From: Entomortierella parvispora E1425
Lineage: Eukaryota > Fungi > Mortierellomycota
Assembly (NCBI GenBank): GCA_020891255.1
Contig: BQFW01000002.1
Location: forward strand, 2,232,001 to 2,296,000
Direction of reading: 5' to 3'
Length of the DNA: 64,000 bases
The notes beneath the pieces were generated by a model. The model ran no database searches. It had not been told where the DNA came from and worked only from the letters and a program-made list of their open reading frames with translations. Both the position numbers and the translations under genes were made by a program. Positions 41,414 to 48,688 of the stretch are shown piece by piece; the stretch's first letter is position 1, and each line of letters starts with the position of its first letter.

Positions 41414-42532
41414 CTAAAGGACAACAGCTTGATCGGGCATAGCAGGGAAGGGCACCCTCTTGTAGGACGTGACATAGGTTCCGAACCAGAAAAGCATTCC
41501 AAAGAACAAGCCTGTAAGCTTCTCTGTCAGATGGTGGTAGTACACACTGGTCATCAGCAACATCCACCACCACAGTCCACAGAGTGTGATAACCGAGATG
41601 ACAGCATATCGAGCGCCCGGTCTGTTATCCAGAGCCGACCATGACTCGGGCACATTCAAGAAGACTGACAGCTCCTCCATCAAAAAGAGCCACGCATGGG
41701 TCAATAAGAACATATGACCCGAGATGTCGACTCCTCCTGTCCAGTTTCCGCCTTGACGCCGACAGTGGTGTTGAGACCAGTGACCGTCTACGGAGCAACG
41801 ACCACCCGTCATTACAAAGACGCGGTCAAAGAGACCTGGTCCAAAGAACCATTGAGAAATAAGCCACCAGTATAGTGTCGCCAGAGCCCATCGGACCAAC
41901 GCCCTCATAATGACGTCTGAAAGGACCCGAGCGCTTGCCCGTGTGCCCCGTTCTGGCAAGTTGGTGCCCACCATCGATGGTACTGATGGATCCTGCTCCT
42001 CTGGATGTGATCTAGTTTGTGTCCTTGTAGATGTCGTTGAAAGGTTACCGTCCTCTTGAGGTCGCTGCACGTTAAGTTCTACTCCGTTTCGCTGCTGTTC
42101 CGGCTGCTGCTTAACTAAGGCCTTGCCAAATACAACAGCAAGGTACATCAGGAAGACGATTGAGGTCCAACCCCAACCATTTTTGACAAAGAGCATGTTT
42201 AAAATGTTTCTCTTGTTTGAGAAATAGCTGGGGCGGTCTCCACCAACGAATCCAAAGATCGATCCGAGCAAAAGTGTCACTGGAAAGATAAAGCAGAGAA
42301 ACTGGTGTGGAAGCAACAGGGACGATAGAATTGGAGACCAGGGCCCCGGAGTGGTCGAGGCTGGTGTCTGAGCGAGCTCTTGAAGGGTTGCATGGGGGAA
42401 GACTGGAGAGTCGGGAGCACGGTCCCGAGACCTTGTAGACGAGTTGAGGGATGACGTGAATTGGGAGTCAGAGTCACCATCTAAAGAAGAGGACACCGGC
42501 TGGTGTCCCCGCCGGTGTATCGTCGGCTCCAT
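41414..42532 (-). CDS. FIT2/SCS3: Fat-storage-inducing transmembrane protein / acyl-CoA diphosphatase (FIT/Scs3)
   Basis: YFSNKRNILNMLFVKNGWGWT, QWFFGPGLFDRVF..TGG.C, G.DISGHMFLL and TSVYYH...EKL.G. Confidence 0.93.
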   Translation of the reverse strand: MEPTIHRRGHQPVSSSLDGDSDSQFTSSLNSSTRSRDRAPDSPVFPHATLQELAQTPASTTPGPWSPILSSLLLPHQFLCFIFPVTLLLGSIFGFVGGDRPSYFSNKRNILNMLFVKNGWGWTSIVFLMYLAVVFGKALVKQQPEQQRNGVELNVQRPQEDGNLSTTSTRTQTRSHPEEQDPSVPSMVGTNLPERGTRASARVLSDVIMRALVRWALATLYWWLISQWFFGPGLFDRVFVMTGGRCSVDGHWSQHHCRRQGGNWTGGVDISGHMFLLTHAWLFLMEELSVFLNVPESWSALDNRPGARYAVISVITLCGLWWWMLLMTSVYYHHLTEKLTGLFFGMLFWFGTYVTSYKRVPFPAMPDQAVVL

Positions 42533-43480
42533 GATGTGCGAGATATAGGGGACTAGGGAATGAGTAGATGAGAAAGATAGAGGTGAGGCAGAGATGCGGA
42601 TAAAAAGGAGAAAGTGACTGCTTTTGCACATGCCAAGGAACTGAACCAAAGGATTTTAAAGTAAAAAACGTGGCCCGCTGCTCTTTGATTCAGACGTTTG
42701 CAAGCCCCCTGTGCCATGCTGGCATTGGATATTCATTCCCGCATGGCACCTCCGGAACTCCTGTGTGGAAGCGGAAAGGACGCGTCACATGTTTAGTAGG
42801 TGTGGACTGACGATGTGCAGCTGCATTCATTGCTATTGACTCCAATATCAGTCCAAGTATGTAACCCTACCTTTGTCTGGCATGCCTCTGCTTCTCCCTG
42901 GCAATCATGTCATAGTGGAGGCAGTTCCCCTTGACATGCATAGCGTGGCTTCCTGGGCTTATATTCCGTGTTCAATGTAATAGCCGTTCTGCCTTCCAGC
43001 TTATCAATTCAAAGGATCAATGAAGTGATTTTCTTGGCCTGGAAGAAAGGAAGCAAGCTAATATCAAACCTCCCGTCGCCCGGCCTTCCCATGCCTCTTG
43101 TCGTTCCTGCTCATCTCTCCATTGAGGTTGGTATAGCTATCGAATTAGTTTTGTCGCCTCCACACCCATGGCCAAACGTGTCTGGGATGTCTCCAAGTAC
43201 CACAGCTTCAGAGCTGACAGTTGAAACCTCATGTGACACTAATGGCACCCGTAGGTTCGCCATGGGTCCTCATTGAACTGCTATTTCAGACATTTGCCCC
43301 TCTTGAAGTTTTCCTGTGTCGTTGCGGCTCTACTTCGAGTCTCGCTCGACAGCGGCACGAGAACACTCCTGAAAAGTGTCTCCAAAGGATCGATGAGCTT
43401 GAAGAGGCCCACTTTAACTACAGTCTCAAAGATGGTAACCTCGAGGCTGGAAAAAAAGTTTTTATTCATAGGAGTAGCTG

Positions 43481-45758
43481 CTATCCGAGTCGGCCGGTCA
43501 GATACTCTTGAGAATCAAACAGAGAGGCCTGAATGGTCTTACCGTCAAAATGTCTCCCGTTTAGCTGTGCAGCTGCTGACCTTGCATCTATTCATTTCCA
43601 TAGAAATATATTAGATTTCGTCAAAAAAAAAAAAAAAAAAAAAAAAGGTGGGAATATCTCCACAACCAAAATCATAGCCACGATGCACAATATCAAAACA
43701 TAAACTTACCAACAGGAGAGGAGAACTGGATAAAGATCCGCAATAACCCTTCTGCTGCGCTCAAAGGCATCAGCTGTACTCTAAGAACTGGTCCGTATTT
43801 GCTACACTCCTCCTTAAATTCCTCCTCCAGCTGATCATCCACATCGGCAGGCGTAGCCTCATATTGTAACCGTACGACATTCGATTCCACAGCTCCAGAA
43901 GACTGCATAGTCGCCGGTGAAGGGGGTAGAATGCCACCACTTCGAGCAAGACTCTGCATTACCATATAACGTTGATTTCCACTGATGCTCATATTTTCCT
44001 CCGACGCCACGGACTCACGGTCTCCATTGCCAGCACTGCTGTTTTGTCCGAGGGCTACAAGTCGCTGCGCTGTGGAAGCAGCCGTGGCTGTAGCTCTTGC
44101 TAGCACTGATGAGTCGAAGAATACAGGGTCAATTGCGCTGGAAAATGCTGCTGACCTAACGCGGACGAAAATAAAACAGCCTCACTTACATGCGGGATTT
44201 ACGGGTGCTGCTCCGGGCATGGATACCATTCCTGCTCTTGAAGGATGGATTCCAGCCGCGGTTGCAGCCGTCGATTGAGCTGTTGGTGCTACCATCGGCA
44301 TATTATCCAGAGCTTTCATACCTTCTGGAAGTGGTCCTCCTACCATAGCCTTGCACACACCGAGGGCTTGATCCAGGACTTTGAATCCCTTCATAGCTTC
44401 AACCAAGGCATCAATATCAGTCGCAGTCTTGTACTGCACATAGCTAAAAGGCAAAGGCTTCGTTAGCTTCACCCAGTTTGTAAATTAGTTTTGAGATGCT
44501 CAGGCTGCTGTTGAGGTATCAGCTTTGATGACTATTGCCGCTTACCCAAATCCTCTGTGTTGACGCGTAACTGGGTCAGGCTATATAAATTAAGGCAACT
44601 GTTAGACGCAAAGCTCTGACTGCGTTAGAGTGTCACGACATCACAAAGCACTCTTACCAAAAGTACGCATTGTTCTACTGTCCCGAATGATTCAAAAATC
44701 TCTTTAAGGGCAGTCTCCGAGATAGGTGCTCCAACATTAGCCACGTAGATCCGGTTCTCTGGGGGAGGAGGCATATCTATACAAATAGTTACGAGAAGGA
44801 TTAGCGTTTAGATCGAAGTAAAACTTGGCTTCATATTCAGACATGGTCATCTCCTTTTACCATTGATGGCACTAGCATCATAGTTTTTAGGTCTACCAAT
44901 CTTCAAATGTCGTCCAACTACCTCCACAGAGTCAGAGGCTTGAACAGCCAAAATCGCGGCCTCGGGTAACTCATATTCAACAAAGCAGAATCCTCTATGC
45001 TTTGAAGTGCCTGGGTCAGACTTTAGGACAAGCTCTTTGATAGCACCAAATCGTCCCAGCTTCTGTCGGACGTCGTCCTCTGTGGCTTCAAAAGATATTG
45101 AGCCCACATAAACCCTGCACAATGACTTCCTTTGCTCCGATACATTAGCGACAGCCAACGAGGGCTCAGGCTCGGTCGCTGATGCGAGAACTCCTGCTTT
45201 GAATAGCTGGAACATGATGAAAAAAAGGTGAGAATGGAGGCGCTTAAACTGCTTCATCTCATAGTAGAACCTAGACGACTCTCCAACCATACCTCTTCTT
45301 GAATTTCTCTTGCATATTGCTTGGCGCGCTCCAGAGCCTTTGATTGCGATGCAGTTAATCCTGTAATTGGGTCCTTTGGTTCCTCCTCCCGCTCCTTCTT
45401 CTCGTCTGGCAATAAAGAGGGGTAATTTAGCAACTAGTGCCCTCGAAAGGAGAGTTTATCAGCTTGTCCCCAAGAGAGGCAGATGGATGGTCTTACCTTG
45501 ATCTTGAGTCATTGTAACATCTGATGACTCTGTTCCATTAGCAGCAGAGTCGCTGACTGGCATGCTCTCATCATTCTGATCCTGATCCACACGTGCTTTC
45601 TTTGCTGTTGGAGTTGTACTTGAATCAACCTCAGTGGTGCTTTGTGGGGTTGAAAATGGGCTGCTCACTGCCGAATCCTCCAAGTGCTCGCTGTTCGGGT
45701 CATTGGGTCTCTTGAGTGCGTTTGGCGCAGCCGTTGCTGTTGGTGATCCTTCGTCCAT
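43481..45758 (-). CDS. PUF60: Poly(U)-binding splicing factor PUF60-like (RRM1, RRM2, C-terminal UHM), multi-exon
   Basis: LTASQSKALERAKQYA, CRVYVGSISFE, KHRGFCFVEYELPEAA.LA, RIYVANV, and UHM VVRLQ....DVDDQLEEEFKEECSKYG...LNGRHFDGKTIQA. Confidence 0.9.
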
Positions 45759-45910
45759 GGTTTCTAGGATGTCGTTAACGGGGGGGCGAGGAGGATGTGA
45801 ACAAAAAGGATGGCGCATGTGACGTGCAATCAGATCAGTTTGAGCGTCTTCATCCGATCAGTTTGATCTGATCCGATCTAATTGCTCCTTTGCTTTCTCC
45901 CTCAGTCACC

Positions 45911-47009
45911 ATGCTTCGCCACTCCAAGAACATCTTCGCCACTCTCTCTAGGCCTTGCAGCAGCCGCTCGCCTCTTACTCCTCATGTAAGGGCGGGCAAT
46001 TGCAATCTCGACGCGCGATTTGGCCTTACAGACAACTGACGGCGTGCCTTGCAACCTACCGATAGTTTCCAGCTGCAACGCTCAGAACCGCCTTGCCATT
46101 CACAGTGCAAGACCGTGGCTTCAAGACAAATGTATTGCAGATCCGCAAGGGATATGTTGTAGAAATCAACAACACTCTATCCGTTGTCCTCAAACGCGAG
46201 ACCTCAGTGGTACGGCGACTTTGTAATTCTTGTGTGTGGTGTAGGGGACCTTCACTGACGTATACAGATGCATACTATTTAATAACAATAGATGGGCCGC
46301 GGAACATCCACAGTCAAGGTATATTTGGACTTTATAGTGAAAGAACGGGCCTAGAAAGCCGAGCTGACAGAGTGTCATTGATGAAATCTGGGATAGCTTG
46401 AAGTTCAGGATCTTCTTACGGGCACAAAGCACACTGAGAGATACCGATCCGGCGATATGGTTGAAGTGACAGAGCTGGATGATCACAAGTGCCAGTTCTT
46501 GTACAAGAACGACGGTCAGCTGCATCTGATGGACCCTGAAACCTTTGAGATGTATGAAGTACCGGAATCGATCATGGAAGGTGAGCAATTGCAAGAAGAC
46601 TACCTACCCCAATCCCTGGTCCTTCTTTCTCTGGAGAAGTATTGAAGACCTTCTAGGCTGCTATTCACTCACTACCATTACTGCCACCGTCACCACTCCT
46701 GCTGCTGCTGTTCAATATCATGGTTTAGACAAGCAAGCGCAGTTTCTGTTGCCAGACATGCACGTCAGTCTGTCCGTGTACCGACCCGACCCTGACACCC
46801 CTGGAACGCCAATCTCTATCAAACTGCCACCCCAAGCCATCTTTGAGGTCAAGGAGACACACGCATCTGCGGCCCAGTCCAACAAGGGCACCGTGTACAA
46901 AAATGCCGATCTGGATAACGGCATCAGGGTGCAAGTGCCCGATTTCGTTAACGCGGGTGACAAGGTTGTGGTCGATACCGAGACTGGCAAGTACGTGAAG
47001 CGCGCGTAG
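45911..47009 (+). CDS. efp: Bacterial-type elongation factor P with N-terminal mitochondrial-type presequence, 5 exons (45911-45985, 46066-46209, 46292-46318, 46397-46580, 46729-47009), ~236 aa
   Basis: QIRKGYVVEIN, loop SVMGRG, LEVQDLLTG, QFLYK.DG..HLMDPETFE, PISIKLP and KNADLDNGIRVQVPDFVNAGDKVVVDTETGKYVKRA. All four GT-AG introns splice in frame. Confidence 0.93.
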
Positions 47010-47288: not shown

Positions 47289-48688
47289 ATGTCCACTACT
47301 ATTGCTGAAACTGAGATCCGCCGCGAGATCGTGCCCTGGCATGACTTTGTTGCGGGAAGGTAAGACGCCGATGCATGGACCCGTTCCGCTTGCCACCAAA
47401 ATAAAGACTGCATGCACAGTGCATGCAGTCCGCCCGCTCATGGACAACAACTAAACAGCCTTCTATTCGTATTTTTGAACCTTTTATAGCCTTGGTGGAA
47501 TGGTACTACCTCTGACAAGCAGTCAATTCGATTCAGGTGTCAACTTTTGTCAAATTTTTAACGGTCGATAATCAATCCCCTTGTAGGCTCAAGTCACAGT
47601 AGGACAGCCCATGGACACAATCAAGACTAGACTTCAGATCGAAGGCCCTTCAGGGCGCTTTAGTGGTCCAATGGACTGTTTCCGCAAAACTATTAAGAAT
47701 GAGGGCTTCCTTGGCTTGTACAAAGGTCAGTGAGACTTTGTATATTGTATATTATATTTGGACAATTGTTCCTCAACGTATTTGCTGTTACTGCTTTTTT
47801 TAGGCATGGCTAGTCCCTTGGTTGGAGTTGCTGCTGTGAATGCACTCTTGTTTGCCGCATACTCGAACTTTAAGAAACTTCAGGAGCCTTTCCCGGGTGG
47901 ACCTTTGACACTTGACCAAATTGCCATCGCAGGAGCGGGAGCTGGTAAAGTCTTGCGGAAGTTCAATGCGTCAGAAACAAGCAAAGTAAACAGGACGCTA
48001 ACCACATTTAACCCTCTGGGATGTGCTCCATTCCCGCCTATAACGTTAGGTGTCGTCAATGCCGTGCTTGCTTCTCCTGTGGAGCTGCTAAAGATTAAGA
48101 TGCAGGCTCAATACGGACCAGGATCAAAAACACATTACTCTGGACCTGTCGACTGTGCACGTCAATTGATCAAGGAGCATGGATTCCGTCATGGATTGAT
48201 GCGCGGCTATTGGATTTCGGTTGTAAGGGAAATTCCCGGTTACGCTGGTTTCTATGCAGGATTCGAAGGCATGAAACGCTATCTGACCCCAGCAGGAGAG
48301 GACCCTGCTACCTATGCCCACGGAATGTTGTCCCTGATGGCCTCTGGAGCTACTGGTGGAGTCTCTTATTGGTTTGCATGCTACCCCTTGGACATGTTGA
48401 AGTCAATGGTAAAAAATCAATTCCTCGATCTTCAATCCGAGACCCCTAGGCGGACGATCACAAGACAGCCCCTGACTTGTCAATCTCTTTTTTTTTCCCT
48501 AGATTCAAAACCAGCCCAACCCTCCCAAAGGCGCATTTTATATTCTGGATGCTGCGAAGCAAGTGTACAAAGAGGGCGGAATCAAGCCCTTTTTCCGAGG
48601 ATTTTCGCCAACAATCATCCGTGCTGTTCCTGCAGCTGCCGCCACGTTTACAACATATGAACTAGTCATGCGTGCACTCTCTACCTAA
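47289..48688 (+). CDS. Mitochondrial carrier (SLC25; carnitine/ornithine/Ymc1-like), multi-exon with a 13-nt microexon
   Basis: DFVAGSLGGMAQVTVGQPMDTIKTRLQ, GLYKGMASPLVG, SPVELLKIKMQ, YPLDMLKS and FFRGFSPTIIRAVPA. Three PxD/ExxK signatures. Confidence 0.93.
47406..47430. repeat. Perfect 12-bp inverted repeat with 1-nt spacer in carrier intron 1
   Basis: GACTGCATGCAC-A-GTGCATGCAGTC. Confidence 0.95.

Follow-up and report, generated by a model that had tools for sequence, protein, structure and literature searches.

The 64,000-nucleotide stretch of the Entomortierella parvispora E1425 genome analysed here (contig BQFW01000002.1, positions 2,232,001 to 2,296,000 of the forward strand; the whole stretch is called the window) carries at 45911-47009 an intron-bearing nuclear gene for a complete elongation factor P (EF-P). 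We consider it probable that it encodes a mitochondrial EF-P (mtEF-P), a protein whose import and activity in the fungus we infer. The gene belongs to a family that is spread across the eukaryotes, lies closest to the EF-Ps of alphaproteobacteria, and shares intron positions between fungi and a liverwort.

Gene structure and product

The reading frame opens at the first in-frame ATG, downstream of an in-frame stop just before 45890, and is restored by the removal of four introns, all bounded by GT..AG, with phases 0/0/0/1 and with a CTGAC branch-site motif in three of the four (Table 1). The spliced product of 236 residues is identical to the public entry "elongation factor P [Entomortierella parvispora]" (NCBI/UniRef). 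The unspliced RNA is not able to encode EF-P, as translation reaches a stop in intron 1 and the frame is shifted by intron 2. The gene sits on a 3.99-Mb contig with eukaryotic genes on either side, the GC content is even across the region, and the same gene structure is present in three other Mortierellaceae. These observations confirm that the locus is a genuine intron-bearing nuclear gene and exclude bacterial contamination. This agrees with the first-pass annotation of the DNA, which had described a real nuclear gene, not a bacterial contaminant, encoding a complete three-domain EF-P with four spliceosomal introns; its limits, 45911 and 47009, are exactly the start and end of the gene, the gene model is exact, and all three Pfam domains exceed their gathering scores.

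Table 1 Exons, introns and other features of the mtEF-P candidate gene, followed by its neighbours (positions in the window)
Feature	Position	Strand	Description
Gene, mtEF-P candidate	45911-47009	+	5 exons, 4 introns; ATG at 45911, TAG ends at 47009
Exon 1	45911..45985	+	codons 1-25; first part of presequence, MLRHSKNIFATLSRPCSSRSPLTPH
Intron 1	45986..46065	+	80 nt, phase 0, GTAAGG..AG, CTGAC branch motif; within presequence
Exon 2	46066..46209	+	codons 26-73; end of presequence, then EF-P domain I from K45
Presequence end in exon 2	46066-46122	+	codons 26-44
R42-G43-F44	46114-46122	+	candidate R-3 processing motif closing the presequence
Intron 2	46210..46291	+	82 nt, phase 0; among sampled genes, in Mortierellaceae only
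Exon 3 (microexon)	46292..46318	+	27 nt, encodes MGRGTSTVK, domain-I loop tip
Arg76 codon, CGC	46298-46300	+	position of E. coli Lys34
Intron 3	46319..46396	+	78 nt, phase 0; ancient position (column and phase shared across kingdoms)
Exon 4	46397..46580	+	codons 83-143 and 1 nt; closes domain I (KOW-like) and covers most of domain II (OB)
Intron 4	46581..46728	+	148 nt, phase 1
Exon 5	46729..47009	+	codons 144-236 and TAG; end of domain II, whole of domain III, including Y232 and R235
FIT-family open reading frame (fat storage-inducing transmembrane protein)	41417-42649	-	strong match, 4.5e-49
RRM_1 gene, divergent	44850-45758	-	open reading frames 44850-45290 and 45462-45818
Mitochondrial carrier gene, Mito_carr	47291-48660	+	1e-22; directly downstream of the EF-P gene

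Domain architecture and fold

In the full protein, Pfam recognises EFP_N with 45.4 bits (cutoff 23), the OB domain EFP with 52.8 bits (cutoff 27; residues 113-161) and Elong-fact-P_C with 61.9 bits (cutoff 25; residues 182-235); when single exons are scanned the N domain is split and weak. The protein passes the NCBIfam model of the EF-P subfamily, NF001810 (168.6 against a cutoff of 161), while the NCBIfam equivalogs for the paralogue EfpL/YeiP remain far below their cutoffs (94.8 against 216 and 87.4 against 264). A relative of the protein from a liverwort exceeds the cutoffs of both NF001810 and the efp equivalog TIGR00038.

The AlphaFold model, with a mean predicted local distance difference test score (pLDDT) of 88.5, contains three beta domains from residue 44 onwards, and matches the L-shaped, tRNA-like fold of three beta barrels that characterises EF-P. 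The top 17 Foldseek matches, which include crystal and ribosome-bound structures, are all EF-P (E 1e-17 to 1e-14), the best being Pseudomonas EF-P 3oyy with a template modelling (TM) score of 0.84, followed by 6s8z with 0.81; EfpL scores lower, and the matches to a/eIF5A extend over two domains only. Membership of the EF-P family is thus solid on architecture and fold.

Residues that matter for EF-P are also kept. R76 aligns with the Lys of the bacterial P-G-K-G loop and is invariant in an alignment of 18 eukaryotes. The C-terminal Y232 and R235, each invariant in an alignment of the family, correspond to E. coli Y183 and R186, which contact the small subunit and tRNA.

Presequence and probable mitochondrial targeting

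We judged the targeting features by composition, hydrophobic moment and motif conservation. Relative to the bacterial start the protein carries an extension of 44 residues with six R/K, one D/E and ten S/T, which bears out the earlier description of a presequence rich in Arg and Ser and poor in acidic residues. The corresponding extension is 38-51 residues long in Mortierellaceae (5-8 R/K and 1-3 D/E), 8-32 residues in other fungi and 45-93 residues in plants and algae. The first in-frame Met after M1 is M74, which lies within the functional loop, and the extension must therefore be present in every full-length product. In the AlphaFold model the extension is disordered, with low pLDDT over residues 1-40 and confident values from residue 44 onwards.

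The junction between extension and body carries a recurrent motif. In 23 of 27 Mortierellaceae, R-x-[F/Y/A/V] stands just before the residue aligned with bacterial K2, and the motif precedes the bacterial-type start also in the majority of the remaining fungi, in plants, in Cyanophora and in a haptophyte. Examples, with a slash at the junction, are DRGF/K in the window protein, RYY/K in Rhizopus, RGY/K in Allomyces, RGA/K in Rhynchospora and RYV/S in Cyanophora, and plants have R-G-A/V/T. R-x-[F/Y] at this junction resembles the R-3/R-2 type of processing site used by the matrix processing peptidase (MPP/Icp55-type, with Arg at -2 or -3). Fungi lack a plastid, and the mitoribosome is the sole bacterial-type ribosome in a fungus.

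Data on other eukaryotes point to the same compartment. Tandem mass spectrometry identified peptides of Arabidopsis AT4G26310 in mitochondria that had been purified on Percoll gradients from cell culture (supplement of PMC11142381), and the flanking sequence printed with them is about 70% identical to the angiosperm members of the clade of the window protein and unlike bacterial sequence; the plastid-type AT3G08740 is absent from the examined part of the supplement files. The predicted mitochondrial proteome of Andalucia godoyi includes an EF-P (PMC7050145), and a two-domain EF-P homologue of Plasmodium, PF3D7_0913400, is a high-ranking mitochondrial candidate (PMC8550323). The presequence features, the junction motif and the Arabidopsis mass spectrometry together suggest that the fungal EF-P would likewise be imported into mitochondria.

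Conservation within the Mortierellaceae

Most of the full-length homologues found in Mortierellaceae have 224-252 residues. With exact splice recovery, E. beljakovae, Linnemannia elongata and Lobosporangium transversale have the same five-exon layout as the window gene; across the four species the position of intron 1 is common, and the 27-nt microexon and the exons of 184 and 278 nt are identical in size. Between species, identity is 22-49% over the first ~44 residues and 73-80% over the remainder, and a conserved body behind a fast-changing N-terminus is the usual pattern for a targeting peptide followed by a conserved enzyme. In the mature part, the four species differ at a proportion of 0.11-0.15 of nonsynonymous sites (pN) and 0.77-0.89 of synonymous sites (pS), the latter being saturated. 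These values indicate strong purifying selection along the full length of the mature protein.

A eukaryote-wide family

Searched exhaustively with HMMER, 1.84 billion cluster representatives yielded 855 matches at E <= 1e-10, and relatives were identified via name look-ups and two profile searches. Many of the best HMMER matches have an N-terminal extension together with a G-R-G loop in place of the bacterial P-G-K-G. Among fungi, relatives occur in Mucoromycota (Rhizopus, Mucor, many other Mucorales, Umbelopsis and Bifiguratus), Zoopagomycota (Basidiobolus and Coemansia), Blastocladiomycota (Allomyces) and chytrids (Globomyces, Phlyctochytrium and Caulochytrium). The Archaeplastida contribute the glaucophyte Cyanophora, Chlorokybus, Chara, Bryopsis, liverworts and many angiosperms, and further relatives were found in the CRuMs protist Diphylleia and the haptophyte Chrysotila. 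The loop tip is Arg in nearly all the extension-bearing eukaryotic relatives, with Chrysotila retaining Lys. EF-P with a presequence is thus a eukaryote-wide family and not peculiar to the Mortierellaceae, and the window gene is an ordinary member of it.

One further member (locus L094, 6001-6576) is a single-exon gene on a compact 54-kb contig, among genes for FAM192A, GUN4, an S1-domain protein, intraflagellar transport (IFT) and dynein-regulatory proteins. The IFT, GUN4 and dynein-regulatory neighbours indicate a green picoalga as its source.

Alphaproteobacterial affinity and shared introns

The trees were built with bacterial references, drawn from mislabelled chromosomes of a plasmid collection, for Ralstonia, Neisseria, Paraburkholderia, E. 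coli (EF-P and EfpL), Xanthomonas, Acinetobacter, Listeria, Fusobacterium, Leptospira, Phocaeicola, Neochlamydia and Acetoanaerobium. The named alphaproteobacteria came from the best 80 matches, nearly all alphaproteobacterial, of a search whose patterns derive from a five-sequence alignment of alpha-like type; the outcome of this search is biased towards the class, and the sequences serve as tree references only. In a quick tree of 179 rows, all eukaryote-type sequences fall in one clade of 58 rows (SH-aLRT 88), beside alphaproteobacterial EF-Ps. In a careful tree of 77 rows, obtained with the LG+C20 model and posterior mean site frequencies (PMSF), the eukaryotes all lie within the alphaproteobacterial clade (94/90), and the beta-proteobacterial Arg-type EF-Ps of Ralstonia and Neisseria, together with Fusobacterium, form a distant clade (100/99). 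The fungi are monophyletic (100/93), with the chytrids and Allomyces on one branch and the Mortierellaceae and other zygomycetes on the other, and the EF-P relationships across five fungal phyla broadly match those of the fungi themselves. The picoalgal sequence sits on a very long branch (1.86), and the careful tree, when unconstrained, places it apart from the remaining eukaryotes. Alphaproteobacterial EF-Ps are also the closest relatives by sequence, with 33-39% identity.

Constrained trees were compared by the approximately unbiased (AU) test. Placement of the Mortierellaceae with the beta-proteobacterial Ralstonia/Neisseria clade is rejected, with a difference in log-likelihood (lnL) of 93 and p = 3.3e-5. 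Forcing all 26 eukaryote rows into a single clade is not rejected (p-AU 0.53), and the likelihood under this constraint even exceeds that of the free tree, by 1.5 lnL. Because the beta-proteobacterial Arg-type clade is distant and the joint placement is rejected, the loop-tip Arg of the eukaryotes is an independent change in an alpha-type, Lys-tipped lineage and does not tie the gene to the endobacteria.

The introns were compared by exact splice mapping of six genes on one alignment; Basidiobolus, for which no canonical model was obtained, was left out. Three positions are shared between fungi and the liverwort Calypogeia. At column 126, in phase 0 and right after the loop strand, an intron is common to Entomortierella (intron 3), Rhizopus, Bifiguratus and Calypogeia; at column 150, in phase 1, to Rhizopus, Allomyces, Globomyces, Bifiguratus and Calypogeia; and at column 200, in phase 1, to Rhizopus, Allomyces, Bifiguratus and Calypogeia. 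All three introns of Rhizopus coincide with three of the ~8 core introns of Calypogeia, for which we estimate a chance probability of ~2e-6 under random placement over ~570 sites. Intron 4 of the window gene was considered as a fourth shared intron and was not counted, as it lies 8 alignment columns from the phase-1 intron of the other fungi and the liverwort. Among the genes sampled, introns 1, 2 and 4 of the window gene are lineage-specific and intron 3 is ancient, and the 27-nt microexon is the result of a newer intron gained nine codons upstream of the ancient intron 3.

The three positions common to fungi and the liverwort indicate that the gene was nuclear and intron-bearing before fungi and plants diverged. 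Taken together with the alphaproteobacterial affinity, they make transfer from the mitochondrial ancestor the simplest reading of its origin. The first-pass annotation had left two sources side by side, retention from the mitochondrial ancestor and acquisition from bacteria such as the endobacteria of Mortierellaceae; the former fits the alphaproteobacterial affinity, the shared introns and a eukaryote monophyly that is not rejected, and the latter fails for Burkholderiaceae endobacteria in the AU test.

Proposed role and alternative explanations

In the mechanism that we propose, the gene would derive from the efp of the alphaproteobacterial ancestor of mitochondria, or of an equally old alphaproteobacterial donor, would have moved to the nucleus and gained introns before the split of fungi and plants, and would have persisted in early-branching fungi, in plants and algae, and in several lineages of protists. 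The precursor, with its basic presequence of 44 residues, would probably be imported into the matrix and cut near R42-G43-F44, ahead of K45, giving a mature start that coincides with the start of bacterial EF-P. Judged from bacterial EF-P, the mature factor would enter the vacant E-site region of a stalled mitoribosome and bind there, between the P and E sites, with domain III on the small subunit. The Arg-tipped loop would there stabilise the P-site peptidyl-tRNA, and peptide bonds at Pro-Pro and other slow motifs in proteins encoded by mitochondrial DNA (mtDNA) would form faster.

We also favour, with a good deal less assurance and only slightly over its denial, a broader proposal for the family as a whole. 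The mtEF-P subfamily would be as old as the last eukaryotic common ancestor (LECA); the change from Lys to Arg at the tip of nearly all its members would be independent of the EarP lineage, the Arg being either unmodified or subject to a novel eukaryotic modification; and repeated losses, those in Dikarya and animals among them, would have made TACO1 the sole polyproline factor there. The view that mitochondria are without EF-P would then be valid for the model organisms only.

Several observations weigh against the first of these two proposals. The window protein scores below the cutoff of the efp equivalog TIGR00038 (164.4 against 185.8), a sign of divergence from bacterial EF-P. Its domain-III loop, which in bacteria and plants is K-G-D/Q-T-A, has become Q-S-N-K-G-T in the Mortierellaceae; other fungi have a loop like theirs, and plants and alphaproteobacteria retain K-G-Q-T-A. 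In bacterial EF-P the K-G-D/Q-T loop contacts the E-site codon and uS7, and the fungal change may therefore alter the contacts with the small subunit. In the one well-studied bacterial lineage of Arg type, the Arg tip needs rhamnosylation by EarP. Detection of AT4G26310 by mass spectrometry demonstrates presence in a mitochondrial preparation, not exclusive localisation. Support for the alphaproteobacterial placement is moderate, and the trees were built without cyanobacteria and several other phyla. Finally, no Dikarya or animal names occur among the named matches, a result that covers named matches only and is not proof of absence.

The loop and the equivalog score also favour a different function for what would still be an ancient nuclear gene, in which case the protein would serve as a gene-specific activator of mitochondrial translation, act at the first peptide bond, or work outside mitochondria, leaving polyproline to a TACO1/DPC29 homologue. 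The Lys-to-Arg change at the tip comes without a known modifier here (none was searched for), human TACO1 suffices alone, the yeast homologue is nearly dispensable, and the mtDNA-encoded proteins of yeast have few Pro-Pro motifs. Yet the three domains, the fold, the basic loop tip, Y232 and R235 are all conserved, purifying selection is strong over the entire mature protein, the presequence is obligatory and a plant relative was found in mitochondria; moreover, bacterial EF-P and YebC coexist and act independently. We therefore regard a change of function as unlikely. Rather less likely still, in our estimation, is that one or more ancient transfers from a free-living alphaproteobacterium into an early eukaryote took the place of inheritance from the endosymbiont. 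The eukaryote groups are not resolved against alphaproteobacterial subclades in the careful tree and their distribution is patchy, but losses explain the patchiness equally well, the tree constrained to eukaryote monophyly is not rejected and even slightly better, and fungi and liverwort have three intron positions in common. These data do not separate such a transfer from endosymbiotic gene transfer, and the functional reading is the same either way.

The two remaining explanations concern a bacterial source closer to the present. Mortierellaceae host Burkholderiaceae endobacteria (of Mycoavidus/Mycetohabitans type), from which the gene could have been transferred recently, with introns and presequence gained afterwards, and the beta-proteobacterial loop tips are also Arg (SGRNAA in Ralstonia, GGRSSA in Neisseria). 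This is rejected as extremely improbable, however, given the rejected joint clade, the distance of the beta-proteobacterial Arg-type sequences from the eukaryotes in both trees, homologues in five fungal phyla whose tree broadly mirrors fungal relationships, and an intron of the window gene whose position is common to Rhizopus, Bifiguratus and a liverwort. That the frame comes from a bacterial contig or insert, as an otherwise bacterial family might lead one to expect, has a probability close to nil: four canonical spliceosomal introns are required to restore the frame, the 3.99-Mb contig has eukaryotic genes on both sides and even GC, and three further genomes of Mortierellaceae share both the exon layout and the gene upstream.

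Relation to known factors

The nearest clade to the fungal mtEF-P candidate is that of the alphaproteobacterial EF-Ps, which are of Lys type (K-P-G-K-G) and have the same three domains, the same fold and the same C-terminal Tyr and Arg. The fungal protein differs from them in its nuclear gene with introns, the presequence of 44 residues, the G-R-G tip and the diverged domain-III loop. EF-Ps of EarP type (Pseudomonas, Neisseria and Ralstonia, with rhamnosylated Arg32) likewise have Arg at the tip of the domain-I loop, and one of them, 3oyy, is the best structural match; they form a separate clade, nevertheless, and their loop is S-G-R-N-A-A, whereas that of the window protein is M-G-R-G-T-S. 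EarP is not known from these eukaryotes, in which no search for one was made. EfpL/YeiP, the E. coli paralogue with an unmodified Arg33, has three domains and an Arg tip in common with the window protein, which nevertheless scores far below the EfpL cutoffs and matches EfpL structures less well, E. coli EfpL also being the most distant sequence in the trees. EfpL is a bacterial example of an Arg-tipped factor that is active without modification (PMC11611912).

Among eukaryotic proteins, Andalucia mtEF-P, Plasmodium PF3D7_0913400 and Arabidopsis AT4G26310 are nuclear-encoded, as is the window protein, and have been assigned to or detected in mitochondria; the Plasmodium protein lacks the C-terminal domain, whereas the fungal EF-P is complete. 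eIF5A/aIF5A is homologous in domains I and II and works by the same general mechanism, though in the cytosol; it consists of these two domains only and carries a hypusinated Lys, and its matches to the window protein are weak (NCBIfam 24-27 bits, Foldseek ~135 residues). TACO1/DPC29/YebC has the same proposed task, the passage of the (mito)ribosome through polyproline, and is a functional analogue only, with an unrelated fold and binding on the A-site/EF-Tu side, in contrast to the E-site side for EF-P.

TACO1 papers, reviews and two 2026 publications (2024-2026) hold that mitochondria lack EF-P and that TACO1 fills its role in humans; the first-pass annotation had likewise given an absence of EF-P in yeast and human mitochondria and relief of polyproline stalls by human TACO1 as established, and this is indeed what the papers of these years state. 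Our literature search found nothing dedicated to mitochondrial EF-P, to fungal EF-P or to EF-P in LECA, and no paper on the eukaryote-wide clade, the Arg loop, the shared introns or the presence in fungi. What was already known is the public EF-P annotation and a passing mention for Andalucia and Plasmodium; what is new is the mitochondrial, Arg-tipped EF-P subfamily of alphaproteobacterial descent, with its fungal members.

The statement that mitochondria lack EF-P is probably true for animals and Dikarya only, and the account of TACO1 has been built on this supposed gap. Mucor, Rhizopus, Mortierella alpina, Arabidopsis and Marchantia are tractable organisms in which EF-P and presumably TACO1 would serve one mitoribosome, and the natural series of losses may tell which conditions permitted the loss of the factor. 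The modification state of a new, Arg-tipped lineage of EF-P is also opened to study, and the shared introns make an unusually clean case in which a gene from the endosymbiont had already reached the nucleus when fungi and plants parted.

Neighbouring genes and other EF-P sequences

The divergent RRM_1 gene probably starts ~150 bp away from the ATG of EF-P. This head-to-head arrangement recurs at each of the three further loci studied in Mortierellaceae (those of E. beljakovae, Linnemannia elongata and Lobosporangium), and its conservation suggests a conserved shared promoter region. On the downstream side, synteny of EF-P and Mito_carr with Rhizopus microsporus (carrier at L096 2540-3655) was considered and discarded, as identity between the two carriers is no more than 23% (E = 0.001) and the proximity looks coincidental.

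Some bacterial sequences met in the searches deserve mention. EF-Ps without an extension, of ~186-190 residues and with a G-R-G tip (P0058, P0074, P0095, P0097, P0105, P0117, P0145, P0152, P0175 and others), are far from the eukaryotic clade and near a locus labelled Patescibacteria; an Arg tip must accordingly have evolved on several occasions within EF-P. Among the loci L055, L040, L027 and L048, those labelled Patescibacteria and Caldilineales fall with the EF-Ps of free-living bacteria that have this "GRG" loop. Four metagenomic gene calls for EF-P of Rhizobiales type (H-P-G-K-G-T; P0043, P0045, P0048 and P0088) carry "extensions" of 58-93 residues that are found in none of the near-identical proteins and are probably mis-called starts, so that extension length alone is no proof of eukaryotic origin.

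The other loci of that set belong to metagenome-assembled genomes labelled Janthinobacterium lividum and Flavobacteriaceae; their EF-Ps group tightly with Acetobacteraceae and with the Rhizobiales type, respectively, and the contigs are probably mis-binned. A bacterial EF-P group (P0084, P0122, P0128, P0144, P0149, P0155 and P0164) has the loop P-G-N-L-R for P-G-K-G, the basic residue having moved by two positions. Finally, the 1.2-Mb conjugative plasmid pmHSR1_P of Paraburkholderia hospita (L083) encodes a divergent EF-P-like paralogue with a loop of A-G-G-G-K type, which forms a small, well-supported clade (100) with P0158 and P0178.

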